The position numbers and the translations under genes were made by a program. Under the pieces are notes generated by a model. The model saw only the letters and a list, made by a program, of their open reading frames with translations. It did no database searches and had not been told where the DNA came from. Below are positions 2,679 to 62,931 of a stretch of 64,000 nt of DNA, piece after piece (position 1 is the stretch's first letter; every line of letters starts with the position of its first letter). The stretch is taken from sequence record MK250017.1; one strand, 5' to 3'.

Positions 2679-2894
2679 TTATTTAAAAATATCTTCTAAT
2701 TTTTTATATTCATCTTTTGATATATCATATTTAACAACTGAAGATGAATGAGCAGAACTCAAAGTATTACAAGTATCTATATGGTAAGAATTATCATATC
2801 TATCAAGATAAAAACGTACTATACATGAAATATTAATATAACCTGCACTTTTTGTATATATAAATTTTGTCTTATTATTCTTTAACTTTATCAT
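2679..2894 (-). CDS. Small hypothetical protein; possible paralog of 41981..42286
   Basis: MIKLKNNK start, INISCIV motif. Confidence 0.6.
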   Translation of the reverse strand: MIKLKNNKTKFIYTKSAGYINISCIVRFYLDRYDNSYHIDTCNTLSSAHSSSVVKYDISKDEYKKLEDIFK

Positions 2895-2954
2895 AGTATA
2901 AAAACATTATTATATATTTTTTATATAATATTAAATTGATTTTGTTTAATATAA

Positions 2955-3278
2955 ATGGCAGGTTTTGTATATCTTATTTGTAACCCTGATTAGAATTGTT
3001 ATAAAATCGGAGTAACAAGGGATTTAGCATAGAAACGATTAAAATAGTTATAGACAGGAAATTCATCAAAATTACATATAGTTCATTCTGTATATAGTGA
3101 ATATCCATTTAGGTTAGAATCTATGTTACATAAAACATTTGATTCAAAACGTTCTGAAGGTGAATGGTTTAATTTAGAATAGAAGGATGTAATTAATTTT
3201 AAAGATATATGTAATGAAAAAATTAATATTATTAATATTATGAAAGATAATCCATTCTTTAATAAAGATTTAAAATGA
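2955..3278 (+). CDS. GIY-YIG superfamily T5orf172/Mug113-like protein (TAG=Gln)
   Basis: Absent from the ORF track. Read with TAG=Q: MAGFVYLIC..CYKIGVT..RLKQLQTGN..GEWF; 107 aa, 5 TAG, ends TGA. Confidence 0.85.
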
Positions 3279-5890: not shown

Positions 5891-6425
5891 ATGAATATAA
5901 TATTTTTAATATTTGAAAAAATCTACCTTCAAAAAAGAAAGAAATNNNNNNNNNNNNNNNNNNNNNNNNNNNNNNNNNNNNNNNNNNNNNNNNNNNNNNN
6001 NNNNNNNNNNNNNNNNNNNNNNNNNNNNNNNNNNNNNNNNNNNNNNNNNNNNNNNNNNNNNNNNNNNNNNNNNNNNNNNNNNNNNNNNNNNNNNNNNNNN
6101 NNNNNNNNTGTTTTACCAAAAAGTCTACATTTATCTTAATTATTTTTTAATCGGATTAAAAATAATTTATAACTAATTAATAATCAATAATTTAAATAAA
6201 TTAATTTTCATATAAATTAATATAAAATAAAAATTCAGATCTAAATTACTTAAATTTAAATCTGAATTTTTAACTAATATAAAAAATTAAATATTATATA
6301 TAAATATCTATCTCAANNNNNNNNNNNNNNNNNNNNNNNNNNNNCAAGTTTCAAGAAAAAGTCTATTTTTTTACAAAATATTTTTAATAAACACTAAAAA
6401 TAATTTATAACTAATTGATATATAA

Positions 6426-8281: not shown

Positions 8282-8884
8282 TTAAACCTTTGTTCTTTTC
8301 TTATTATATGGATCATTCCAAATTCCTTTAATAATAAGTTTATCAATATCAATATTAAACTTATTTGCAATATCTTCAAGTGAAATCATGTTAGCTGAAT
8401 CCGATTCTTTATCTGCTTTAATCTTCTTTCTAAGAATCTTTTCGGTTTCTTTACGATAATACTCTGCATCGCCAGGGCTATCAAATAACTTAATATCAAA
8501 ATTAGTTAAATCTGTAACTTCATTTATATTCAAAAATTGAAGTTCACTATATATTGATAAACCAGATGTATATCTTATATGAGACCATGCAATATCGAAC
8601 ATTTCTTTTGCAGTTTCAACATAATGATACTTATCATTAAAAGATGTATTAATACTAAACAATACATAACAACCTTCATTTGAATTATTATAAATCATCA
8701 AAGGAAATACATAATTCATTTGAACTTTCTTATCATGTTCACATATACCACATCCCCATATAATTTTTGAATAAGGAAAAATATCATTATTATTTGGCGA
8801 ACCAATTGCATAATGACGATATGTAAAATCATCATTAATAAGATACTTATCTAAGTCTTTAATATCTTTAATATTATTAAACAT
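8282..8884 (-). CDS. Hypothetical protein with C-terminal HTH-like segment; paralog of 8955..9590
   Basis: ISLEDIANKFNID vs FTIKEIADALGVE; shared FDSxxDAExYRK. Confidence 0.7.
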   Translation of the reverse strand: MFNNIKDIKDLDKYLINDDFTYRHYAIGSPNNNDIFPYSKIIWGCGICEHDKKVQMNYVFPLMIYNNSNEGCYVLFSINTSFNDKYHYVETAKEMFDIAWSHIRYTSGLSIYSELQFLNINEVTDLTNFDIKLFDSPGDAEYYRKETEKILRKKIKADKESDSANMISLEDIANKFNIDIDKLIIKGIWNDPYNKKRTKV

Positions 8885-8954: not shown

Positions 8955-9590
8955 TTAAATATGGTCAGCAGAATCAAATAATACATTCATATTTTCAATT
9001 GAATCAATTATCTTGAAATTAGACGTTTCAACTCCTAATGCATCTGCGATCTCTTTAATTGTAAAATAACCTTCTTTTGCTTTTTTAATAGCATTACGTG
9101 TATATTCTTCAAATGACTTGCGGTATGTTTCAGCAATATCAAATGAGTTAAAAATTTTAGCTGGATAATTTTTTGTAAAAAATACGTCGGAAAAATCACA
9201 TGAATATACACGAGGTGTAAAGAATGTACGAATTGTCTTCTTATTCTTACTAAGAATAGAAGGATATATACATTCCAAAACGTGTTTTGGAATTGCATGC
9301 ATATGATAGTATGGAGTATTAATACAATTATAATACTTAACAATAAGTATAGGTACAATATAATTATTAACAATACGATTATTTCTCTTTAAAACAATTG
9401 TATACCAGCAAATATTATAATCTTCTCCTAATTTAAGAGTAGATACATCAATACTATTATTAATAATTTTTTCTGCAATATCTTTATCAGTAAGATACTT
9501 ATTTAATTCTTCGAAAGAATTAATAGCAGATGCAGATGCATTAATTAATGTATTATGTGACTCTGATAAGTAATTTTTATTTGATTTCAT
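8955..9590 (-). CDS. Hypothetical protein with C-terminal HTH-like segment; paralog of 8282..8884
   Basis: See paralog. Confidence 0.7.
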   Translation of the reverse strand: MKSNKNYLSESHNTLINASASAINSFEELNKYLTDKDIAEKIINNSIDVSTLKLGEDYNICWYTIVLKRNNRIVNNYIVPILIVKYYNCINTPYYHMHAIPKHVLECIYPSILSKNKKTIRTFFTPRVYSCDFSDVFFTKNYPAKIFNSFDIAETYRKSFEEYTRNAIKKAKEGYFTIKEIADALGVETSNFKIIDSIENMNVLFDSADHI

Positions 9591-28364: not shown

Positions 28365-29378
28365 TTATGCTTGTTTTTTATTTAATGCATAAAAATAATT
28401 CTTTAATTCAGAAAATGAAAAGAATTCTAAATAATTTAAACCATGTTTTTCTGCTATTTCTCTTTTCATAATATCTCTAGTTGTCCAAACATTAATAGCT
28501 GAAATATAATAATCTTTTTCTTTCGATCTCTTTTTCCATAAATTTAATTTCTTAATGTCGTCGGGATTATTTTTATCAAAACCATGTTTACCATGTGTCC
28601 AATGAAAATTACATTCAATATATAAATCATTATCTGCAATATAAAAATCACAAGCAAAAGGATATTCTTCTGATTTATATTGTCTTTTAATATCAGTATA
28701 TATTGTTTTTAAAAGTTCATATACTTTATCTTCTTCCTTTGAACATGTATGTGTTTTATGTTTCGTTTTAGATTCATGTATTTTGTCTATTGTTGATTGT
28801 AATTGTGTAGTNNNNNNNNNNNNNNNNNNNNNNNNNNNNNNNNCTTTTCTTTTTTCTTTTATAACTTCACATTTACCAACATTATCAACACCATACTTTT
28901 CTAGTACAGTTTCTTTACGTTTTTCCTTTACATAGTCACTAGCTAATGCCATTTCAGTACCATAACGTTCTAAATTCGTGGCTTTAATTTTATCCCATAC
29001 TTTCTATGATTTTGCAGGATTATCTACACCATAACGTTCAATATTTGTTTTCTTTATCTTTTCTTTAACACTTTCTAATTGAAATGGATTTGCAACTCCA
29101 TATTTTTTAATCATAGATTGCTTTTTCAGACCATATATACATTTAGAATTACCACAACTTTTGTGATATTTATAACCGTCACGTTTACATGGTTTTCCAC
29201 AAATATGACATCTTGGTACATCATTAGTATCATTTAATATACATAACAGTTTATCGATAATATCCATATCAGATTTATCGATAAACTGTGTATTTAAATA
29301 TTCAATAATATTAACAGGTATCTTATTTTTATTTAATGAATGCTCCTTATAATACTATTTTATATATTCATTATTCAT
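28365..29378 (-). CDS. Putative free-standing homing endonuclease (Zn ribbon, KYGV repeats, Vsr/PD-(D/E)XK-like C-terminus; TAG=Gln)
   Basis: Two track ORFs join through TAG; CHICG..CGNSKC, RYGVDNP repeats, CDFYI..IECNFHWTHG; contains an N gap. Confidence 0.7.
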
Positions 29379-32421: not shown

Positions 32422-32445
32422 CATNNNNNNNNNNNNNNNNNNNNN

Positions 32446-35615: not shown

Positions 35616-36992
35616 CTTAGAAATATTGCTTTATATGTTCATAAATATTATCAGTAAATAACTCAGAAGAATATGTTGTATATTTCCTAATATTTTTATA
35701 TTCCTATAAAATTTGTTGTTCTATACAAAATGCAGTATAAAGTTCATATTGTTTATAATATAATATCTCTATATCTAATACAATACTAGAATTACGCAAT
35801 GCAGATGAACGTAATGAACGTATTCTCTACTTTGGTGTTTCTTTTTTTGTTATACCTATTTTATAAAGTATTTGGTTATTTGTTTTATCAATAACTTTTA
35901 AATAATATAATATTCCTATATGTGATTTTTGTTCAGGATGATTATTAAACCAATCTATATTATATCCACCTGGTACATATCCATTTAATATAGTTCTTTC
36001 TATTTTACATTTAGGACATTCCTAACCTGCATTTAGAAATTTAGAAATTCTTTTTTCAAAAATCCCATGTTTTGGACAAATAATCTAAATTTTAGATTGT
36101 TTTGTTTTATAAATGTCTCTATTGCTTTCTGGATATGTATAATAATCGCCATATTTTTCTTTACACATACCAATAATCTAATCATATGTAAATGATTTAT
36201 GTAATGCTCTCATTTTATTACCACATAATGGACAACCATTTTTATTGCCGTTTATTATATGTGTACGAGCTAATACATTAAAAGCACCATGTATAGGACA
36301 GATAACCGTTATTTCTGAATTTACTAATCCGGTCCAGTTATCTAAATTATATGTAAATTTATTATTATATTTTTTATTAGCTATTTCTAAAAATTCTTCT
36401 TTTGTTATTCTGGATTCAATTTGAGCTTTTTTATTTGCTAATGTTCCCTTGTATGTTTTATCTTTATATTTCTATGCACACATTGGACATCCAAATTTAT
36501 TTCTTAAATGATCCATCGGGCGTTGCCAGAATGTTCCATGTTCTGGACAAATTATTTCAACTGGAGTTCGCATAGTTATATATTTTACTTTACTATAATC
36601 AAACTTATTATTGAATAATTTTTCACCTCTATTTATGAAACTTTGTTTATAAAACTCATTTCCACGGACTATTTCTTCACCCTCATCATTACATGCTAGG
36701 GGCAAGGCGCTTCCACCATTATTGGAATCTAATGGCGTACTCCCCGAAGGGATAGTCTCTGAACCTTCCTAATGAGTAGTCAATTCATTAGGCTTGGCTG
36801 CAGATTCTTGTACTATATTTTCTATTAAATTATCTGACATCTAAAAAGTATTTTTATGTTTCATTTTATTTATCGTGATAATAAAATATAAAATATGAAT
36901 ATACACATTCCTGCAATTCACCTTGTTATTCAATGCCACTTACGCAGCAAGGGAGCCATTTTTACAATCTGCCTCAACAGCAGTGTACGCTA
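35616..36992 (-). mobile_element. Group I intron in NAMPT
   Basis: Exon 1 ends in U and the intron ends in G; P AATTGCAGGAA, Q AATCTGCAGC, R TCAGAGACTA, S AAGAAATAGTCC; IGS AAAATG-G-CTC (36953-36962) pairs both exons. Confidence 0.92.
35617..36840 (-). CDS. Intron-encoded endonuclease (three CPxHG..CPxC Zn-ribbon repeats + YKIGIT GIY-YIG-like domain; TAG=Gln)
   Basis: Frame open from ATG 36840 (or 36864) to TAA next to the 3' splice site. Confidence 0.8.
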
Positions 36993-43652: not shown

Positions 43653-44870
43653 ATGAAAAAGAATAATTATCTATATGAAGAAATGATACAGGATATTTCT
43701 GTTATCGTTAAACATCGAATAAATGAAGCATATGATAATCAACTTCTTGAAGAATATGGTGCAAAAGATATATTTAATGATGTAATGAAAGAAGCTACAA
43801 AAGATGGAAAAATCTTTTATACACATCTTAAAAAATTTATTATTTATGTTATCAAAAAACTTCAAGAAACAAATCAATATAAGCAAGCAGAAAAAATGAT
43901 GAATGCATATGTTCAGAAAATATAGAAATATATAAATGAACATAAAAAGATTACACCTCGTCGTATGTTAAAAATTACAGTTACTGTATTAGCAATATAT
44001 GGCGGTGTATCAATGGTATAGGATTGTAAATCACTAATAAAATCACTACAAAATAATGTAGAAACATATGAGCAAACAGCAGAAGATATTCCAGATTTAC
44101 AATAGGAAAATATTACTGTTGATGAACCAGAAAATTTTGTAGTCAATGTAAAGGATGAAGCAAAATAGACATTAAGTGTTAAACATGTTTCATAGGAAGA
44201 TATTAATAATTCTCCTGCAAATAAATTCGAACATGATAAGAATTTCAATTTTAAATCAAGTAACAGTGCACGTGAATTTATTAAAAAACATGAAATGCTT
44301 CTACTTTATCCTTATTATGCAAATGAAGCTGAAGAAAAACAAGGTAAAGTAACTATAGGTTATGGACATGTTGTATTAGAAACTGATGGTGCATTATATC
44401 AGCAAATACAACAATTAAAAAAGAAAGGTCTTATAAAGCAGTCATTTACTCGTGATAAGAAAACAGGAAAACTTATATTAAATCCTAAACATTGTAAACC
44501 AATTATTACAAAAGTGCAAGCAAATAAATTATTCTTAAAAGATATTAAGATAGCAGAAGATAGAGCATATAAAGCATTGCAAGATATGCCTACTGATGAT
44601 GATAATGTTAAGTGCTATATGTTATATAATCAAAAAATAAGAGATGGATTAACATCACTATGTTATAATGCTGGTAATCTTAAACATGATAAGTATTCAT
44701 TTATAACAAAAGGACTTGCAAAATGTAGATATGATTATAAAAACCAGAAAATTAATCCAGGTGATTATAATGTATCATTCAGTTATTTTAAAAATATTAA
44801 AGATAATCCTAATAGAAGAAATGAAGAATATAAGTTATTCTTTATGAATGCAAATAAATCAATGTCATAA
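43653..44870 (+). CDS. Lysozyme (GH24/T4L-like) with N-terminal propeptide-like segment and TM helix (TAG=Gln, 5 TAG)
   Basis: FIKKHE..VTIGYGH..DGLTSLCYNAG..RRNEE; 405 aa; AATAAATA at 43617. Confidence 0.85.
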
Positions 44871-48334: not shown

Positions 48335-50230
48335 TTAAGAGAAATCACCACCGGTATCACCTCCACCAGTATCTGCAATTTCAGAACCACCAGATCCCAT
48401 ACCAGTATCACCACCAGAGAATGCTTCATCACCGCCAGAGAAGTCTCCTCCACCACCGAAGTCACCTCCACCGGTATCACCTTCAGCCCCGAATGAATCA
48501 TCAAAACCTGAACCTCCAGAATCACCGCCGAAATCCATTTCGCCTGGTGCACCATTACCTTGCTGTTCACCAACTTGTTTTCCCATTTCTTGGTGTTGTT
48601 TAATTATTTTGGCTTGTTCTAATCGTTCAATAATTTCGCCTTGCTTATATTTTTCATTAAGTGCAAAATCTTCATCAGACATACCTAGAAATTTCTCAAT
48701 AAGGAATTTCATACTAAAGAATGGTTTATTTTCACCTAATTGAATTTGTGCTAAAGTACCTATAATTTCAGCCCCCTATTTTAATGCAGTTCTTTCTTTT
48801 GCTTTAACAAATAAGTTTTCTTCATTAAATACAATACCTATACATTGTTTAAGCAATTCAGAATTAGCTAATTCTGGCATCATTAAACATATTTGCACCC
48901 ATAAAGGTTTTAACAAAATTTCACGATACATAACGCGAATACGACTAATAAATCTACTAAATGCATATTCCTCTCGTGTTATACTTGCATCATCTCCACC
49001 TAATGGATGTGCGCCATCAGCAGCAGGATCAATCATAAATCTATTTGCTGGAACTTTTGTTTCTAATATAAAACGTCTCCAAAAATATTTCAATGGTGTA
49101 ATATCACTTAAGTCATAACCTTCTGTAGGTATTTCTTCTATTGTCATCGAATTACCATCACGAATTGGGAAAAAATGAGTTTTGGAAAATGAAAAACGTG
49201 GTTGACCATTTACAACCATTTCACCAGATATTTCATCAACTGTTGTTTCTTCATTCCAATCTGCTTTTACTTCATTAACCTTTGCACGAGCTTTGTCCTA
49301 TGAAATATTACCTACTGGAATACCAACTTTAACACGTTTCTGTGAATTCATAATATTCCAAACCATTCTTGATGTTTCAAGTTGTGTTAACATTGTATAT
49401 GATCTTATTAATCCTTCTAGATAAGAAACTCGTGAATTTTCACCATACATACCTGTTGACCATGATATATATACAATATTTGAATCTGGTATTTTTCTTT
49501 CCAACTATGCATCACCTCTATATTGATACCATACTTTTACTTCTTTTCCTGTTTCTGGATCTATTTCAATATCAGGTTCAAGAGTTGCTGCATCCAATTC
49601 TCTCATACCTATAATACGTGTAGGTTTCATAAGATTATCAACAACAATTTCAAATGCCAAATATCCTTCAACTAAGAATTTTTTAAAATAATTCCATGCA
49701 TCATTTGATTTATCCCATCCATATGTAGAATATATAATCTTAAATGCTTTTTGACAATTTTTAATTAAATCATCTGCAGTTTCACCATTTGCACCTTTAT
49801 AATTAGTGTTAAGCTTTAATTTCAGAAGATTTAAATCTAACTATGCAAAATAATTGTTTTCATCTAATATTATAGTTTCATCTGAAATAGTATCAAGAAC
49901 AAAAGAAATTGTTTGTTGTGAAGCGAACTATCTTAACTATTCACGTCTCTATTGATATGATAAATCATAATATGCATAAGATTGTTTTGTATTTTTAGTA
50001 ATATCAACATACTATGAAAAAGAATTTTGATCCTAATTTAAACCATCGTTAAATGGGTATAATGAATCACCTGTATAATTATTTGTTTGAGCGGAACCTA
50101 AAGCTAATGATGTTTTAAGAATACTCTATGATGAATTTAAACTGAGAGAAGACAGATTAATAAGTGTATTGATTTTATTATGATCTGCTTTTCCTGGATT
50201 AAACTTTCTTGCTATATATTTTGTAGGCAT
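48335..50230 (-). CDS. Portal protein (T4 gp20-like; TAG=Gln, 10 TAG)
   Basis: Three track ORFs plus the N-terminal region join into 631 aa; YLEGLIR..QLE, KYFWRRF..KVP..RF, ITREEYAFSRFI; Gly/Asp-rich tail; AATAAATA at 50255. Confidence 0.9.
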
Positions 50231-50351
50231 TATTATGCTTTTATTTAGTTTTTATATTTATTATATATAAAAATAGGTAATATGTTTATGAAAAATACAT
50301 ATTACCTATCAAACAAAATTAAACAATTAAATATATATATTATGAAAAATG

Positions 50352-50744
50352 TGGAGACATCCGGAGTCGAACCGGAGTATTACTAACTTGTCAATAATAA
50401 ACTATCTACGTGCGTATTTCTTAATTAGTTTTCATCATACATTCTTAGGAGTTAAACAGTTTAATGTCGTAATCACTCTTATTGGACAAAAAGTATAGTG
50501 AGTTTTATTTAACAGAGAAAACACTCACCGAACTCCGTGGCGATGCTCAACTTACCTTGTAAGGAGCAAATGCTTCAATGGGTTTATATTACCAATCCTA
50601 CCGGATTAAGCTGCCATACGAAAATCAATTTCGTCGTCATTTAAATTTATTTGCTAAATTTCTTTGTATTACTACAAAAGGCTTTTAACTTTCCTACACG
50701 ATTTATTACCACATAATTAATAAGCAAAACCAAAAAATGTCCCC
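50352..50744 (-). ncRNA. ssrA: tmRNA
   Basis: 5' GGGGACA pairs 3' TGTCTCC (G3.U70); T arm CCGG-TTCGACT-CCGG; tag frame DDEIDFRMAA* at 50606-50638. Confidence 0.92.
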
Positions 50745-50762
50745 TAAATATTAATTACATAT

Positions 50763-50791
50763 TTTATATATGTAATTAATTAAAAAGTTTA
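50763..50791 (-). promoter_or_regulatory. Sigma-70-type promoter TAAACT-N17-TATAAA
   Basis: Directly upstream of the tmRNA. Confidence 0.55.
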
Positions 50792-51139
50792 CTTTTTCTT
50801 TAACTTTTTACCTGTTTTATAATAACGCTGTAACTTATTATTTAATACAGTATTTATCACATTAAGTCTATGATTTTCACTAATTAACTTATTATATTTA
50901 CTATATAATGTATTATATGATATATCAAAATCTTTAAGTATTTTCTCTTGTGCTTTAATTACATCATCTTGTAATAAAGACCTTTCATCCTGTGTTTTAA
51001 TTATATCATCATTATTTTTTATTATTGAAGTATATATAGTATATAGTTCTTCTCGTTTTTTATCAATATTATTACTATTCGGCGTAAAAATAGCACTTAA
51101 TATATTTGTAAAATAATCAGATAATTTCATAATTAACAT
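50789..51139 (-). CDS. Coiled-coil hypothetical protein
   Basis: 116 aa. Confidence 0.6.
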   Translation of the reverse strand: MLIMKLSDYFTNILSAIFTPNSNNIDKKREELYTIYTSIIKNNDDIIKTQDERSLLQDDVIKAQEKILKDFDISYNTLYSKYNKLISENHRLNVINTVLNNKLQRYYKTGKKLKKK

Positions 51140-51149
51140 TCTTATTATA

Positions 51150-51953
51150 TTAAACGAATATAGTTAATTCCATATTTTGTGACATTAAATTTCCAAATAC
51201 ATTCATAGGAAGTGTTTTTGAAAATGTATCATTAACATACAAATCAATATAATTTGCATAACATGATGACTTATTCAATTTATTTTTTCCTTTCTCTAGA
51301 ACTGTAATTCTACCATAAACAATATCACCTTCTTTAACATCACTTAAATAATTTGTCTTGATATGAATTCGTTTAACAATATATTTCGGTGTTGCTAAAT
51401 AAATATCTCCATTGTTTGGCGCATTATCAATTGCATCCCATTTTGCTTTTCTTCTTGCTGCATTCTTTTGTTGTCTCTTATTATATTCAGCAATAGCATC
51501 TTCTTCTGTTTCAAAACAACGATTCCTTGTATTAACATGTGGTACATCACACACAGAAAGAAGATAATATCCCTCTCTAATTTTATAATTATCATCCGCT
51601 TCTCTTACAAAACATACAGACCATTTGTCTGCAGAAGAATATCTTATAATTTCTGAAGCACCTCTAACTGCAGGTGAAATTTCTTTATTAAGCTTTACAA
51701 ATACAATACGTCTACTATCTTTTGATATAGGATCTACTGTATATAATGATTTACATTCATTATCTAATACTTCTTTCTTGATAAGAAATCCATAAATAGT
51801 TCTACTAAAACTAAAATAGTATGATGATCTCCCACTTTCTTCATAATTACCAAGATATAAATCTGTATTATCAATATAATATTCATCAGGAATATTTGAT
51901 AATGATTTATTATGGTCATATGAATTTATAAATGTATATGATTTTGCTTTCAT
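51150..51953 (-). CDS. Hypothetical protein
   Basis: 267 aa. Confidence 0.7.
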   Translation of the reverse strand: MKAKSYTFINSYDHNKSLSNIPDEYYIDNTDLYLGNYEESGRSSYYFSFSRTIYGFLIKKEVLDNECKSLYTVDPISKDSRRIVFVKLNKEISPAVRGASEIIRYSSADKWSVCFVREADDNYKIREGYYLLSVCDVPHVNTRNRCFETEEDAIAEYNKRQQKNAARRKAKWDAIDNAPNNGDIYLATPKYIVKRIHIKTNYLSDVKEGDIVYGRITVLEKGKNKLNKSSCYANYIDLYVNDTFSKTLPMNVFGNLMSQNMELTIFV

Positions 51954-51993: not shown

Positions 51994-52062
51994 CATAAAA
52001 GTTTTTAAAATAAAAAATGGAGACTATATGAATAATCTCCATTTAATGTATAATATCATTTT

Positions 52063-52281: not shown

Positions 52282-52332
52282 TTAAATTCTCTCACAATTT
52301 TTTTGATCGAAAAAGACAAAATATTATGTTGT

Positions 52333-52614
52333 TTAATTATCAGAGATATAATATTTAAACCCATTCTGTAATTTTGTTAACATATGTTTAATCTTAACAT
52401 CTCTAATTTCTGAATTTTTAATTACATTATATTGTCCTATTATAAGATCAATATAATTAGCAACAGCTTTAGCATCTAATTTATCAATAACTGAATATAG
52501 ATTTATCTCTGGTGTTTTTACTTTACTTTCATATAACTCACATTCTGTTTTATTAGTAAAAACTTTTCCATCATCTGCATAATATTCTGTCTTTATAATT
52601 GTCTTCTGTTTCAT
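52333..52614 (-). CDS. Hypothetical protein (YYADDGKVF..ECELYE motif)
   Basis: 93 aa. Confidence 0.65.
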   Translation of the reverse strand: MKQKTIIKTEYYADDGKVFTNKTECELYESKVKTPEINLYSVIDKLDAKAVANYIDLIIGQYNVIKNSEIRDVKIKHMLTKLQNGFKYYISDN

Positions 52615-52652
52615 AATTGTAAAAAATTAAAAATATTACTAATGTCATGTCG

Positions 52653-52724
52653 TTGGGGATCCGAGACTCGAACTCGGCCTAAGAGTTTTAGAGACTCCTG
52701 TACTGACCACTATACTAATCCCCA
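52653..52724 (-). tRNA. Amber suppressor tRNA (anticodon CTA), Gln-like
   Basis: TGGGGAT/ATCCCCA (U1-A72, G2-C71, G3-C70); loop CT-CTA-AA; canonical T arm. Confidence 0.92.
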
Positions 52725-52754
52725 ATACTATATTTTAATTTACATAACTATTAA

Positions 52755-53525
52755 TTATTCTATATAATCGCTTAATTTCTATTTGTAATGATAATATGTT
52801 GATTTACATACATTATATTTAGTTAAAAAATCTGATTCTGATATATTATTTACAATATCATTCTTCATATCTACTGTTAATTTACTGCAGCCATTAGAAT
52901 TAAATAACTATATTTTCTAATTATATTTAGATATTTTCTACATTAATTCTTGTTTATCACGTGATAATATATATCGTTTTTTAACTAAAAGATTACTGAC
53001 ACTACCTCTTGTAAAATTAACATTCATATCACGTTTTAATTGTTGTAATGATGTAGATGAAACAATATTCTTTGTATTTACATCATAACAATATATTGTA
53101 TGCCTTCCATCATTCTATTTTTCATATGATTTTTTCTAAACTATTAATTTCTATTCATCTGTGAATTTATATCCATCAATACCACCATCACCACCTTTTG
53201 TTTGATTATAACCAGTAGCTCCATAACTATTATATTTACGAATATACTATTTTTCTAATAGATCTAATTGTTGTTTTATATCAGACGTGATATAATTATC
53301 AAATGTTTTTAATATATATAATGAAAAGGAATCTATACCATATTTCTTAAATGCTTTATATATTGGCGCATTATATCTATTATTAACAGAATTATTAATA
53401 TGATGTAATAATCTTTTATGTAGATTTATACTCTAACCAATATAACACTTTTTATTTATATCATTCTAAATCATATAAATACCCGGACACTATGGTATAT
53501 TATTTATAATATCATCTTTACTCAT
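52755..53525 (-). CDS. GIY-YIG homing endonuclease, Seg-like (TAG=Gln, ~11 TAG)
   Basis: Absent from the track; GIYMI..YIGQSINL..R..LEKQYI..GYNQTKGG; 256 aa. Confidence 0.9.
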
Positions 53526-53557
53526 AATAATTTTTAATATTTAATAACCATATTTTG

Positions 53558-53631
53558 TAGCCCCACTCAGATTCGAACTGAGTCAGCGAAAGTTAGAGTT
53601 TCGAATGCTTAAACCATTACATCATAGGGCA
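53558..53631 (-). tRNA. Second amber suppressor tRNA (anticodon CTA), Gln-like
   Basis: TGCCCTA/TGGGGCT (U1.U72 mismatch); CGAAA-CTCTAAC-TTTCG; CTCAG-TTCGAAT-CTGAG. Confidence 0.92.
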
Positions 53632-53646
53632 ATAAAAATATAAAAA

Positions 53647-53997
53647 TTAAATATAATCTTTTCGTCCTGTTCCCGTTTCAGGATTCCATTTATAATATTC
53701 TTTTGGTAAAGTACCTTTACATGTATCAATTAATTTATAATCAGAAATATCAAATCCAAATTTTTGTATATATGTAATATCTGGTTTATTTATACCCCAT
53801 AAATAATAACCTTTTGAATTTTGAAATACATAATAAGTCCAAGTATTATCTATTTCTTCTTCGACTTTTACTTTCTTTTCTGTTTCATCAAATTCACGTA
53901 AAATTTCAATGTCATTTTCTGTAATCTTCATTCTCTTTAATTTCTTCGGAAGATTATTTGTATAACATTTTTGTCCTTTATATAAAAATTCAATCAT
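53647..53997 (-). CDS. Hypothetical protein
   Basis: 116 aa, TAG-free. Confidence 0.7.
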   Translation of the reverse strand: MIEFLYKGQKCYTNNLPKKLKRMKITENDIEILREFDETEKKVKVEEEIDNTWTYYVFQNSKGYYLWGINKPDITYIQKFGFDISDYKLIDTCKGTLPKEYYKWNPETGTGRKDYI

Positions 53998-54012
53998 TTA
54001 ATATTCATATAT

Positions 54013-61394: not shown

Positions 61395-61781
61395 TTAAAA
61401 TGAATGTATATTATTATCAAGACTTGTCATTTCAGATGCTTTAAATTTACCATAAATCTTATTCCATCCTTTTGATAAACCGTTACATAACATACTGGTA
61501 TAATATGCAAATGGATTACTAAATCGTTCTGGATCAAAGCTTCGCCAATACATTGCAACATCCAACATTGCTGTCTGTATACAATCTTCCTTATCCTCTT
61601 GACATTTATAATGTTTCTTTTTTGCTAAATTTTCAGCAATTAACTAAAGCATGACAACAGCATTATATGTAAGTTCATCTCTCTATTTTGAAAGAACTAT
61701 TTCTTTCATCAACTCTTTATTCTACACATATGGTTTTCCACCTTTAGTTTTAATACCTTCTACTTTACTAAAATCTTCCAT
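61395..61781 (-). CDS. Late-transcription sigma factor, T4 gp55-like (TAG=Gln, 3 TAG)
   Basis: Absent from the track; PYVQNKEL (cf. HYVNNKEL), LIAENL, FDPERFSNPFAYYT (cf. FDETKYKNPHAYIT); 128 aa. Confidence 0.85.
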
Positions 61782-61809
61782 GGTTTTTAAATAAAAATAG
61801 CTATTTCTT

Positions 61810-61838
61810 ATTTTACTAAGAAATAGCTAAAAAGTTTT
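61810..61838 (-). promoter_or_regulatory. Degenerate sigma-70-type promoter AAAACT-N17-TAAAAT
   Basis: About 30 nt upstream of the gp55-like ATG. Confidence 0.4.
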
Positions 61839-61845
61839 AATAAAT

Positions 61846-62931
61846 TCATTTATTAATTGCTTCCAAATGTTCTTTTTCATTAGGTGTTAAATTATCAGGA
61901 ATCAAATAATGTACGCATACAAAATAATCTCCTCTTTGATTCATATCAGGTCGTTTAAGACCTTCACCAGATAATCGCATAACTGTACCTTCTTTAATAC
62001 AACTCTGCAACTTTATTGTTTTTGATACACCAGAAGGTATATTAACTGTATATGAACAACCAAGTAATAGTTTATAATAAGGTACATGAATATGCTCTAT
62101 TACATTCAAACCATCAACTTGATATTTGTTTGTATCAAATTTATAATCAGCTATAGCAATAAAATTACCATTCTGCCCAACTGATTTCTTTGATTCTGAT
62201 CCTTTACCACTATATACTTTATATTCACCATTCTGAATGCCTGTATTAAATTCAATTTCAATCTTTACTTCTTGCTTTTCAAATCCAGAACCACCACAAT
62301 GATTACATTTATTTTCTACATAAAAACCTGTTCCATGACATAATGGACAAATTTCTTCTTGAATTGAAAATGTTCCTCTTCCTATAAGAGACTGGTGAAT
62401 AATTTTTCCTGCACCATGACACTTTGGACATGTTTTCTGTCCAGTTCCACCAGCACCATGACATGACGGACAACGTACATCTCTCTTATATTTAACAACC
62501 TTCTTAATACCATTAAATATATCTTCAATAGTAACAGGAATTTTCATTTGAATATCTCTGCCTGGTTGAACTTGATTTCTCTGTTGTTTAGCACCTCCAA
62601 AACCGCTAAATCCTCCAAATGGATTAAATCCTCCAAATGGATCAAAACCCGATCCACCAAATGGATCAAAACCTGAACCACCAAATGGATTTTGCTGACC
62701 ATTTTCATCACCATATGTATCATAATTCTGTTTCTTCTGTGGATCACTCAATACTTCATATGCATGATTCACATCCTTAAATTTCTCTTCAGCTTCTTTT
62801 ACTTCAGATGGTGATTTACCTTTCTGCATATCAGGATGATATTTCTTTGAAAGTTTTCTATATGCTGTCTTTAAGTCTTTCTCATTACAATCTCTAGAAA
62901 CACCTAAAATTTCGTATAAGTCTTTTGCCAT
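61846..62931 (-). CDS. dnaJ: Chaperone DnaJ
   Basis: J domain HPD, G/F region, CxxCxGxG repeats. Confidence 0.95.
   Translation of the reverse strand: MAKDLYEILGVSRDCNEKDLKTAYRKLSKKYHPDMQKGKSPSEVKEAEEKFKDVNHAYEVLSDPQKKQNYDTYGDENGQQNPFGGSGFDPFGGSGFDPFGGFNPFGGFSGFGGAKQQRNQVQPGRDIQMKIPVTIEDIFNGIKKVVKYKRDVRCPSCHGAGGTGQKTCPKCHGAGKIIHQSLIGRGTFSIQEEICPLCHGTGFYVENKCNHCGGSGFEKQEVKIEIEFNTGIQNGEYKVYSGKGSESKKSVGQNGNFIAIADYKFDTNKYQVDGLNVIEHIHVPYYKLLLGCSYTVNIPSGVSKTIKLQSCIKEGTVMRLSGEGLKRPDMNQRGDYFVCVHYLIPDNLTPNEKEHLEAINK

Follow-up and report, generated by a model that had tools for sequence, protein, structure and literature searches.

Organization of the suppressor locus

The DNA analysed here is a stretch of 64,000 nucleotides (hereafter the window) from Prevotella phage Lak-A1 (MK250015), a megaphage of the gut, and the feature under study is a homing endonuclease gene (HEG) lying between two genes for amber-suppressor tRNAs with the anticodon CUA. 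The window and the Lak-A1 genome are 100% identical across window positions 52300-54000, window position 52001 corresponding to genome position 224678, and the whole genomes of Lak-A1 and Lak-B1 were rebuilt from public records. The HEG and both tRNA genes are located on the minus strand.

Read along this strand, the locus starts with the upstream tRNA(CUA), here called tRNA2 (53557-53631, 75 nt), which is recognized by ARAGORN only and is followed by a 31-nt spacer (53526-53556) ending at the ATG of the HEG. The HEG itself occupies 52755-53525 as an open reading frame (ORF) of 256 codons when TAG is read as Gln, 11 of its codons being in-frame TAG. Its stop codon is separated by a 30-nt spacer (52725-52754), measured like the other one directly on the sequence, from the downstream tRNA(CUA), here called tRNA1 (52652-52724, 73 nt), which is recognized by ARAGORN and by Rfam (RF00005, 60.5 bits). 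These values agree with the original prediction, made from the letters of the window, of a GIY-YIG frame with about 11 TAG codons between two tRNA(CTA) genes at gaps of about 30 nt, the count of 11 being exact.

The HEG is free-standing, as it lies between complete tRNA genes and outside any intron or host ORF, and a search with Rfam across 52500-53800 gave no intron match. Moreover, tRNA2 and tRNA1 are the sole intronless tRNA(cta) genes detected by ARAGORN in the 541,664-bp Lak-A1 genome, and the HEG is present as a single copy in the Lak genomes bearing it, no paralogs being found elsewhere in Lak genomes. The order tRNA2-HEG-tRNA1 is also seen in Lak-A2, in Lak-C1 and in independent metagenome contigs. 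Consequently, the arrangement is not a matter of chance, since the only two intronless tRNA(cta) genes of the genome flank a single-copy HEG and this combination recurs in relatives.

The endonuclease and its structure

The product of the Lak-A1 ORF is an intact I-TevI-type GIY-YIG homing endonuclease. The protein scores 70.4 bits against the family TIGR01453, named "group I intron endonuclease", whose curated cutoff is 56.05, and it matches the homing-endonuclease families phrog_314 (6e-21) and phrog_7168 (1e-20) of PHROG, the nearest solved structure by sequence in the PDB being the catalytic domain of I-TevI. A model built with AlphaFold2 from 15 homologs reached a pLDDT of 84, and the top Foldseek matches of this model were the I-TevI structures 1mk0 and 1ln0, with a target TM of 0.80-0.82, an E-value of 2e-5 and a root-mean-square deviation of 2.0-2.8 Å. 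The fold comprises an I-TevI-like catalytic domain at about residues 14-110, followed by a helical C-terminal part with helices at residues 218-255. Matches in Pfam to PF07453 (NUMOD1) or to a helix-turn-helix (HTH) occur in some relatives, the Lak-A1 protein itself having no direct NUMOD or HTH match in Pfam.

Regarding the active site, the GIY and YIG motifs correspond to G15-I16-Y17 and Y28-I29-G30, with about ten residues between them. When the protein was aligned with 14 relatives of 39-72% identity (alignment A3), residues G15, Y17, Y28, G30, R38, H42, E91 and N107 were invariant. R38 pairs with R27 of I-TevI in the phmmer alignment, and E91 and N107 would be the equivalents of E75 and N90, as judged by the motif spacing and by inspection of the alignment. 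Among four Lak lineages, the ratio of nonsynonymous to synonymous substitution rates (dN/dS) is 0.21-0.37 at an amino acid divergence of 30-38%. Thus, the frame is maintained as a protein, and by this estimate it is under purifying selection.

Reading of TAG in the endonuclease gene

Translated under table 11, the HEG region has no open frame of at least 40 amino acids. The in-frame TAG codons are found at codons 12, 20, 31, 93, 125, 130, 137, 196, 203, 206 and 249, and they can be assigned to Gln because they stand at invariant Gln positions and interchange with a Gln codon: Q31, the Gln of the YIGQS motif, and Q125, both invariant in alignment A3, are TAG codons in Lak-A1, and TAG and CAA replace each other between the HEG copies of Lak-A1 and Lak-B2. 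According to published work on Lak proteins, Gln is present at 75-85% of TAG positions (Devoto 2019; Crisci 2021). As far as its sequence tells, translation of the HEG is impossible past codon 11 unless TAG is decoded. This part of the earlier suggestion that the HEG is expressed only once its flanking tRNAs work could be upheld, whereas the gating as such is suggested by the sequence.

With TAG making up 4.3% of its codons, the HEG has the highest TAG density among the window ORFs of more than 110 codons, and 11 of its 17 Gln codons are TAG, compared to a window average of 20%. The only denser frame is a 107-codon fragment of an endonuclease domain (4.67%), located at 2955-3278 on the plus strand and carrying five TAG codons. 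An HNH endonuclease gene (phrog_681/559; 35617-36864, minus strand) has eight in-frame TAG codons, and nuclease genes seem to be generally rich in TAG in this region. Meanwhile, 41 of the 64 window ORFs are free of TAG, including every immediate neighbour of the HEG.

At the level of the genome, the coding density of Lak-A1 rises from 0.56 under code 11 to 0.88 under code 15, with 1,307 in-frame TAG codons distributed across 213 ORFs. Besides the HNH endonuclease, the other window genes containing TAG are those for the portal, an endolysin-like protein and a late sigma factor, and this spread of TAG among the genes fits the published pattern of early genes in the standard code and recoded late genes (Borges et al., bioRxiv 10.1101/2021.08.26.457843). 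The portal gene (48335-50230, minus strand, 10 TAG), the endolysin-like gene (43653-44870, plus strand, 5 TAG) and the late sigma factor gene (61395-61880, minus strand, 4 TAG) are situated amid TAG-free genes, recoded and standard-coded genes being interleaved at short range.

The two suppressor tRNAs

By its identity features, tRNA1 is tRNA-Gln-like, having the pairs U1-A72, G2-C71 and G3-C70, the residues G10 and A73, and the anticodon loop CUCUAAA. Its closest tRNA in Lak is tRNA-Gln(CUG), at only 73% identity. The anticodon stem shows two compensatory pair changes when Lak-A1 is compared to Lak-B2, and the exact 5' and 3' halves of tRNA1 are found solely in Lak-type contigs.

In tRNA2, the acceptor end has a U1.U72 mismatch and A73, the anticodon loop is CUCUAAC, and the tRNA model of Rfam fails to detect it even at E≤1. 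Its 5' half, a 19-nt stretch of acceptor and D arm, matches more than 106 contigs of IMG/VR; when 80 of them were examined, 67 had a tRNA(cta) and three a tRNA-Gln(ttg). In bacterial genomes, the same half marks the chromosomal tRNA-Gln(CUG/UUG) of Bacteroidales, including Prevotellaceae, with which the tRNA2 family has the acceptor, D and T arms in common, and the crAss-like homologs are labelled tRNA-Gln in RefSeq. In an alignment of 28 family members (alignment A4), 8 of the 20 pairs show compensatory changes, in support of the cloverleaf; tRNA2 is therefore considered a real tRNA despite being missed by Rfam and, according to these shared arms, it is a member of a host-type (Bacteroidales) tRNA-Gln family.

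In the same alignment, most phage members with the anticodon CUA carry U72, forming the U1.U72 mismatch, or G72, and the bacterial tRNA-Gln with the same acceptor stem carry A72. The glutaminyl-tRNA synthetase (GlnRS) of Escherichia coli must open the 1-72 pair. By analogy with this enzyme, the U72 of the phage suppressors would be compatible with Gln identity, and it may represent an adaptation for GlnRS recognition after the change of anticodon.

Allelic states of the locus among Lak phages

The variable locus is delimited by two conserved genes taken from the ORF lists, both on the minus strand and free of TAG: the upstream flanking gene, here geneX (53647-53997, 116 amino acids), forms the left border and the downstream flanking gene, here geneY (52333-52614, 93 amino acids), forms the right border. 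Orthologs of geneX edge the locus in the Lak-B genomes as well, having there a different C-terminal half.

Between geneX and geneY, four allelic states were found in Lak-type genomes and contigs. The first, tRNA2-HEG-tRNA1, is that of Lak-A1, Lak-A2, Lak-C1 and several metagenome contigs. In the second, the locus consists of HEG and tRNA1, with the HEG start located 6 nt past the geneX stop codon, as seen in Lak-B2, B4, B5, B7 and B8, in two IMG/VR contigs, in contig L186 and probably in contig L183. The third has neither HEG nor tRNA1, the HEG being absent from the Lak-B1 genome, and contains a tRNA2 ortholog with an insert of 245 nt after U35; it is present in Lak-B1, B3, B6 and B9 and in four other contigs. 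The fourth is tRNA1 alone, on contig L337, where the homology to Lak-A1 sets in exactly with the HEG stop codon and continues across the spacer into tRNA1, following an upstream neighbourhood wholly different from that of Lak-A1. This contig rules out the idea that tRNA1 is found only alongside the HEG. Presence or absence in related genomes had been proposed as a check on the mobility of the cassette, and with four states the cassette is not invariant.

The HEG copies also differ in their condition and in their divergence. In Lak-C1 (MK250029, 184639-185406), an in-frame TGA stands at about codon 87, where Lak-A1 has TTA, before the catalytic Glu; as TGA is a stop codon in Lak, this is probably a degenerating copy, unless it reflects a sequencing error. 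In contig L186, the flanking proteins are 95-100% identical to those of Lak-A1 in amino acid sequence, and the HEG protein only 67%.

In nine Lak-B genomes from baboons, about 40 alignment columns are fixed between genomes with and without the HEG within 934 bp on the geneX side, and none farther out, while the geneY side has no fixed column over the first 1.8 kb and then a small fixed block at 1.84-2.14 kb. The block on the geneX side resembles a co-conversion tract, yet ordinary recombination of a divergent patch would explain it equally well. The conversion tracts anticipated for the flanks have thus a candidate in this linked 934-bp block, with the same reservation. In addition, the breakpoints between allelic states coincide with the borders of the elements, namely the geneX stop codon, the tRNA 3' end and the HEG stop codon.

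The group-I-like insert in the split suppressor tRNA

The split tRNA2 ortholog of Lak-B1 is located at 412033-412350 of MK250020 on the minus strand (2777-3094 of the extracted locus L002), and it is also found in contigs L096, L107, L108 and L338. At the 5' end of the insert, exon 1 terminates in GACUCU and is followed by uuaaauAGGAG, allowing a CUCU/AGGAG pairing with a U.G pair; at its 3' end, the insert closes with GUACG, having a terminal G. The joined exons form an intact cloverleaf with the loop CUCUAAA, and the spliced tRNA would be 85% identical to the tRNA-Gln(CUG) of Bacteroidales. The alignment of the insert with the Rfam model RF00028 is complete (1-253) and places R- and S-like elements with high posterior probability, at a score of 15.7 bits where the gathering threshold is 50 (E=0.11 in a 371-nt search). 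The 245-nt insert is identical in all copies, so that covariation is uninformative. Based on these features, it is described here as a group-I-like element and a putative intron in the anticodon loop.

The split-tRNA locus was not found in the RNA runs. Nevertheless, splicing and function of the Lak-B1 gene are supported, because this genome has 1,362 in-frame TAG codons and no intact tRNA(cta) besides the split gene, because the same tRNA family is interrupted at the same position in five other phage contigs (L064, L092, L046, L114 and L090), and because introns in Lak tRNAs have been published. The CTA suppressor has been described in one or two copies in 38 of 51 Lak genomes, together with tRNA introns (Devoto 2019; Crisci 2021); the introns were called "enigmatic" by Devoto 2019, where the B genomes are listed with an intron in tRNA-Tyr only. 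A tRNA(UUA) gene is located at 290204-290276 of the Lak-A1 genome and at 344976-345048 of the Lak-B1 genome, and it has been reported in all Lak genomes (Devoto 2019; Crisci 2021). By wobble, this tRNA might read UAG as well, which would weaken the case for a dependence of the B1 type on its split tRNA.

Regarding the five other contigs, the inserts of L046, L114 and L090 are cut by the ends of the loci, and the whole insert can be seen in L064 (4342-5414, minus strand) and L092 (1421-2472, plus strand), where it measures about 1 kb and contains a TAG-free gene for an HNH endonuclease of 272-301 amino acids. These ORF-bearing introns were undetected by Rfam. An origin of the Lak HEG from the tRNA introns of other phages was considered and no evidence was found for it, as the intron ORFs are HNH proteins and not kin of the GIY-YIG gene. 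The label tRNA-Ser(cga), given to the split gene by the intron mode of ARAGORN, was rejected too, since the tRNA lacks a long variable arm, the group I rules move the junction on by one base, and CUA is the anticodon of the ortholog. In L064, a 282-kb phage contig, a RAGATH-14 RNA (156.6 bits, above the gathering threshold) and a sub-threshold type III hammerhead occur near the tRNA cluster, these elements being placed by Rfam at 8391-8597 and 9251-9318.

The endonuclease clade and the crAss-like cassettes

Homologs of the HEG were found in nine assembly contexts, eight of which have a tRNA(cta) at 31 nt or less, counting contig L183, which ends within what seems to be the beginning of a tRNA1-type gene; in the ninth, a tRNA-Met and a tRNA-Gln(ttg) lie upstream. 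A profile-guided scan of IMG/VR for the HEG yielded 80 loci, and a tree of 69 non-redundant catalytic domains contains a supported clade (98/94) of 29 HEGs, the Lak ones included. When a tRNA(cta) on the HEG strand at a distance of up to 150 nt is counted as adjacent, 27 of the 29 clade members have such a neighbour (28 after one correction of an ORF start), compared to one of the 40 HEGs outside the clade, and a clustering of this strength was equalled in none of 500 label shuffles. A gap of 1-31 nt between tRNA(CUA) and the HEG start is typical across the clade, whose members come mostly from contigs of about 100 kb.

Three of these members are complete crAss-like genomes, with coding densities of 0.53-0.54 under code 11 versus 0.88-0.90 under code 15, and each of them has one tRNA(cta), directly upstream of the HEG. 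Since their HEGs contain no TAG, the recoding of the HEG does not belong to the module as such but is a feature of the Lak lineage. The Crassvirales phage cr109_1 (NC_055892) has, beside TerL, a "tRNA-Gln" with the anticodon CUA 14 nt 5' of an annotated homing endonuclease. When three Buchavirus genomes are compared, near-identical flanks enclose a different segment in each at the same site beside TerL: cr109_1 (locus L305) has one type of tRNA(cta) with the GIY-YIG HEG, cr113_1 (L339) has a different tRNA(cta) of a 91-nt type with an HNH endonuclease, and cr60_1 (L340) has a tRNA(cta) of the tRNA2 family with a tRNA-Met and no nuclease. Judged from these genomes, cassettes are replaced in Buchavirus in the way already seen for the Lak-B population.

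Proposed spread of the cassette and alternative explanations

It seems rather probable that the HEG of the tRNA(CUA)-linked clade spreads as a selfish cassette at the suppressor locus of recoded Bacteroidales phages. This reading builds on what the sequences establish, namely the identity and integrity of the HEG, its dependence on TAG, the Gln-type tRNAs, the alternative alleles and the clade-wide coupling to tRNA(CUA). The earlier proposal that the HEG acts as a selfish element is favoured by its presence or absence together with a linked divergent flank, by the nonsense-mutated copy of Lak-C1 and by a divergence of the HEG far above that of its flanks.

In the mechanism proposed here, the standard-coded genes and the tRNAs would be expressed early in infection, and the HEG, with its first TAG at codon 12, would be made only once TAG is read as Gln. 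During a mixed infection, the enzyme would then cut the suppressor locus of relatives lacking the HEG, probably within the rival tRNA gene or next to it, and repair from the HEG-bearing genome would copy the HEG along with its linked resistant tRNA. In this manner, a nuclease provided with its own suppressor could take the place of the resident allele and leave the recipient alive. Such a replacement would be harmless because a recoded phage must keep a suppressor, and it would explain the tight linkage as well as the allele-specific tRNA variants. The anticodon-loop group I intron of the alternative allele would be a second selfish element directed to the same target, and it may render that allele uncuttable.

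Several observations weigh against a selfish cassette. The intronless tRNA2 of Lak-A1 adjoins the HEG and, if tRNA2-type genes were the target, this copy would have to be resistant. In one crAss-like lineage, the HEG is present in 17 of 17 contigs of a given tRNA type, which would fit a stable linkage or a domestication as much as mobility. The one-sided block in Lak-B rests on two haplotypes, and there is the second small fixed block on the other side. Finally, contigs from RNA libraries (pig gut, wastewater and another gut metagenome) span the A-type locus at 95-99% identity, and such contigs cannot show transcription.

Other explanations have to be weighed as well. The HEG could be a relic passenger, once mobile and now inherited with the tRNA cluster, its position being inconsequential and its TAG codons resulting from mutational drift in a recoded genome of low GC content. 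The nonsense mutation in Lak-C1, the fixation in the 17 crAss-like contigs and the TAG richness of the other window endonuclease genes (eight TAG in the HNH gene and five in the fragment) agree with such a relic, whereas a dN/dS of 0.21-0.37 over 30-38% amino acid divergence, with all catalytic residues retained, does not. Neither do the clean presence or absence and the replacement alleles among very close genomes, nor the uncoupling of HEG divergence from flank divergence, and we consider this explanation unlikely, though the least unlikely of the alternatives. The protein could also have been co-opted, serving the code switch or the competition between phages instead of homing, for example by regulating the tRNA operon or by cutting tRNA-Gln genes or DNA of the host or of rivals. 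I-TevI autoregulates its own expression. The synteny with tRNA(CUA) is strikingly strict over very different phages, and in the complete crAss-like genomes the standard-coded HEG beside the single suppressor could be made early with the tRNA, both of which a co-opted function would account for; yet phages of the Lak-B1, L337 and cr60_1 types do without the HEG and are fully recoded, and in cr113_1 an unrelated nuclease, of the HNH family, fills this position, a substitution that points to exchangeable selfish elements more than to a dedicated cofactor. For these reasons, co-option is regarded as the least probable of the explanations weighed here.

The locus states could likewise be a mosaic, produced in a hypervariable region of tRNA genes by deletion and by recombination, whether illegitimate or homologous, the nuclease having no causal part. 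Lak-B genomes are indeed extensively admixed (Devoto 2019), the linked block is defined by two haplotypes only, and the upstream neighbourhood of L337 is completely different. However, the exact replacement of tRNA(CUA) and nuclease between conserved flanks recurs independently in Crassvirales, the breakpoints match the borders of the elements, and the free-standing HEG and the group I introns with HNH ORFs both concentrate on one gene family. The mosaic is accordingly held to be improbable, standing between the relic passenger and co-option in likelihood.

Returning to the spread as a selfish cassette, the HEG had also been proposed as a vehicle for the horizontal spread of the alternative code. 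In Lak as well as in crAss-like phages, units of tRNA(CUA) and endonuclease do replace one another within conserved flanks, but a carriage of the code into unrecoded phages is not supported, because the examined genomes with the module are all heavily TAG-recoded, the three complete crAss-like genomes examined being fully so, and because the HEG-less alleles keep a suppressor.

A wider version of this reading is conceivable, although rather doubtful: the suppressor tRNA genes of TAG-recoded Bacteroidales phages could be dedicated homing sites for the GIY-YIG clade, for HNH genes and for anticodon-loop group I introns, each nuclease having its own resistant tRNA(CUA) variant, so that the cassettes would displace one another and move between unrelated lineages (Lak, Crassvirales and others). 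If true, it would explain in concrete terms how the component that enables recoding spreads horizontally and is turned over, and co-conversion could also turn an ordinary tRNA-Gln locus of a phage into one for a suppressor.

Comparison with known systems

SegB of phage T4 and the other free-standing GIY-YIG endonucleases of the Seg and Mob groups in T-even phages perform intronless homing and cause localized marker exclusion. The original prediction drew a parallel to T4 SegB, a free-standing HEG of a tRNA region, and as an analogy this parallel is fitting. Like segB, the Lak-A1 HEG is a free-standing gene, here of I-TevI type, amid tRNA genes, showing presence or absence among close relatives and, by the same analogy, it would be expected to spread via double-strand-break repair with co-conversion of neighbouring markers. 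In contrast to SegB, its neighbours are amber-suppressor tRNA(CUA) genes, the linkage extends through a clade of Lak and crAss-like phages, the Lak copies are readable only in the recoded state, and their cleavage activity is putative. With I-TevI, the endonuclease of the T4 td intron, the Lak-A1 protein shares the catalytic fold and residues; unlike I-TevI, it is encoded outside an intron, and its putative DNA-binding part at the C-terminus shows no detectable similarity in sequence to that of I-TevI.

For a recoded group I intron endonuclease of Agate phages, it has been proposed that translation takes place only late, when the code has been switched (Borges et al., bioRxiv 10.1101/2021.08.26.457843). 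The Lak-A1 HEG is similarly enriched in the reassigned stop codon. The Agate case involves TGA read as Trp and an intron-encoded enzyme within the gene of an early protein, whereas in Lak-A1 TAG is read as Gln and the gene is free-standing, with suppressor tRNAs on both sides.

Group I introns in tRNA anticodon loops are established in bacteria and plastids, for example in tRNA-Leu(UAA) of cyanobacteria and in tRNA-Ile of Azoarcus, and at psbA of cyanophages, a free-standing HEG and an ORF-less intron take part in collaborative homing. The 245-nt insert of Lak-B1 occupies likewise an anticodon loop, and an ORF-less intron and a free-standing HEG are likewise tied to one target gene. However, the Lak intron and HEG are alternative alleles and not partners on one genome as in the psbA system, and the host gene is a suppressor tRNA. 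Compared to the established tRNA introns, the insert reaches 15.7 bits in Rfam against the required 50, and its splicing is putative.

The text of Devoto 2019 and of Crisci 2021, as searched, makes no mention of an endonuclease between the suppressors, of a split B1-type suppressor or of a link to crAss-like cassettes, and in the full-text literature covered, consisting of open-access papers and bioRxiv preprints only, no paper was found that connects the suppressor tRNAs of phages with GIY-YIG genes or with group I introns. It has been published that some suppressors appear to come 'from a bacterial source', that suppressors occur without recoding, and that some recoded genomes have no detectable suppressor. 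The locus described here bears on how the suppressor tRNA, which makes stop-codon recoding possible, is acquired by phages and passed between them. As the coupling between suppressor and homing endonuclease extends across very different recoded phages, a selfish spread of the machinery for code change becomes directly testable. Some of the 'missing' suppressors of recoded genomes may have been overlooked for being split by group I introns, as in the Lak-B1 type. The Lak HEG itself would be a natural example of a selfish gene whose translation is gated by a code change coming from its neighbours.

Other features of the window

Runs of N are present in the window at 5946-6108, 6317-6344, 28812-28843 and 32425-32445 (244 bases in total), none of them near the suppressor locus. 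In addition, the phage encodes a transfer-messenger RNA (tmRNA) at 50349-50744 on the minus strand, between the portal gene and the suppressor locus, with a full-length match to Rfam RF00023 at 54 bits (gathering threshold 47). At about 50351-51329 of the window (genome 223028-224006), the intron mode of ARAGORN proposed a third tRNA(cta), interrupted by an intron of 890 nt, which is most likely an artefact, as it overlaps the 3' end of the tmRNA and two conserved ORFs. Orthologs of the tmRNA are present in Lak-A2, for which ARAGORN gives the tag peptide DDEIDFRMAA*, and also in Lak-B1 and Lak-B2.

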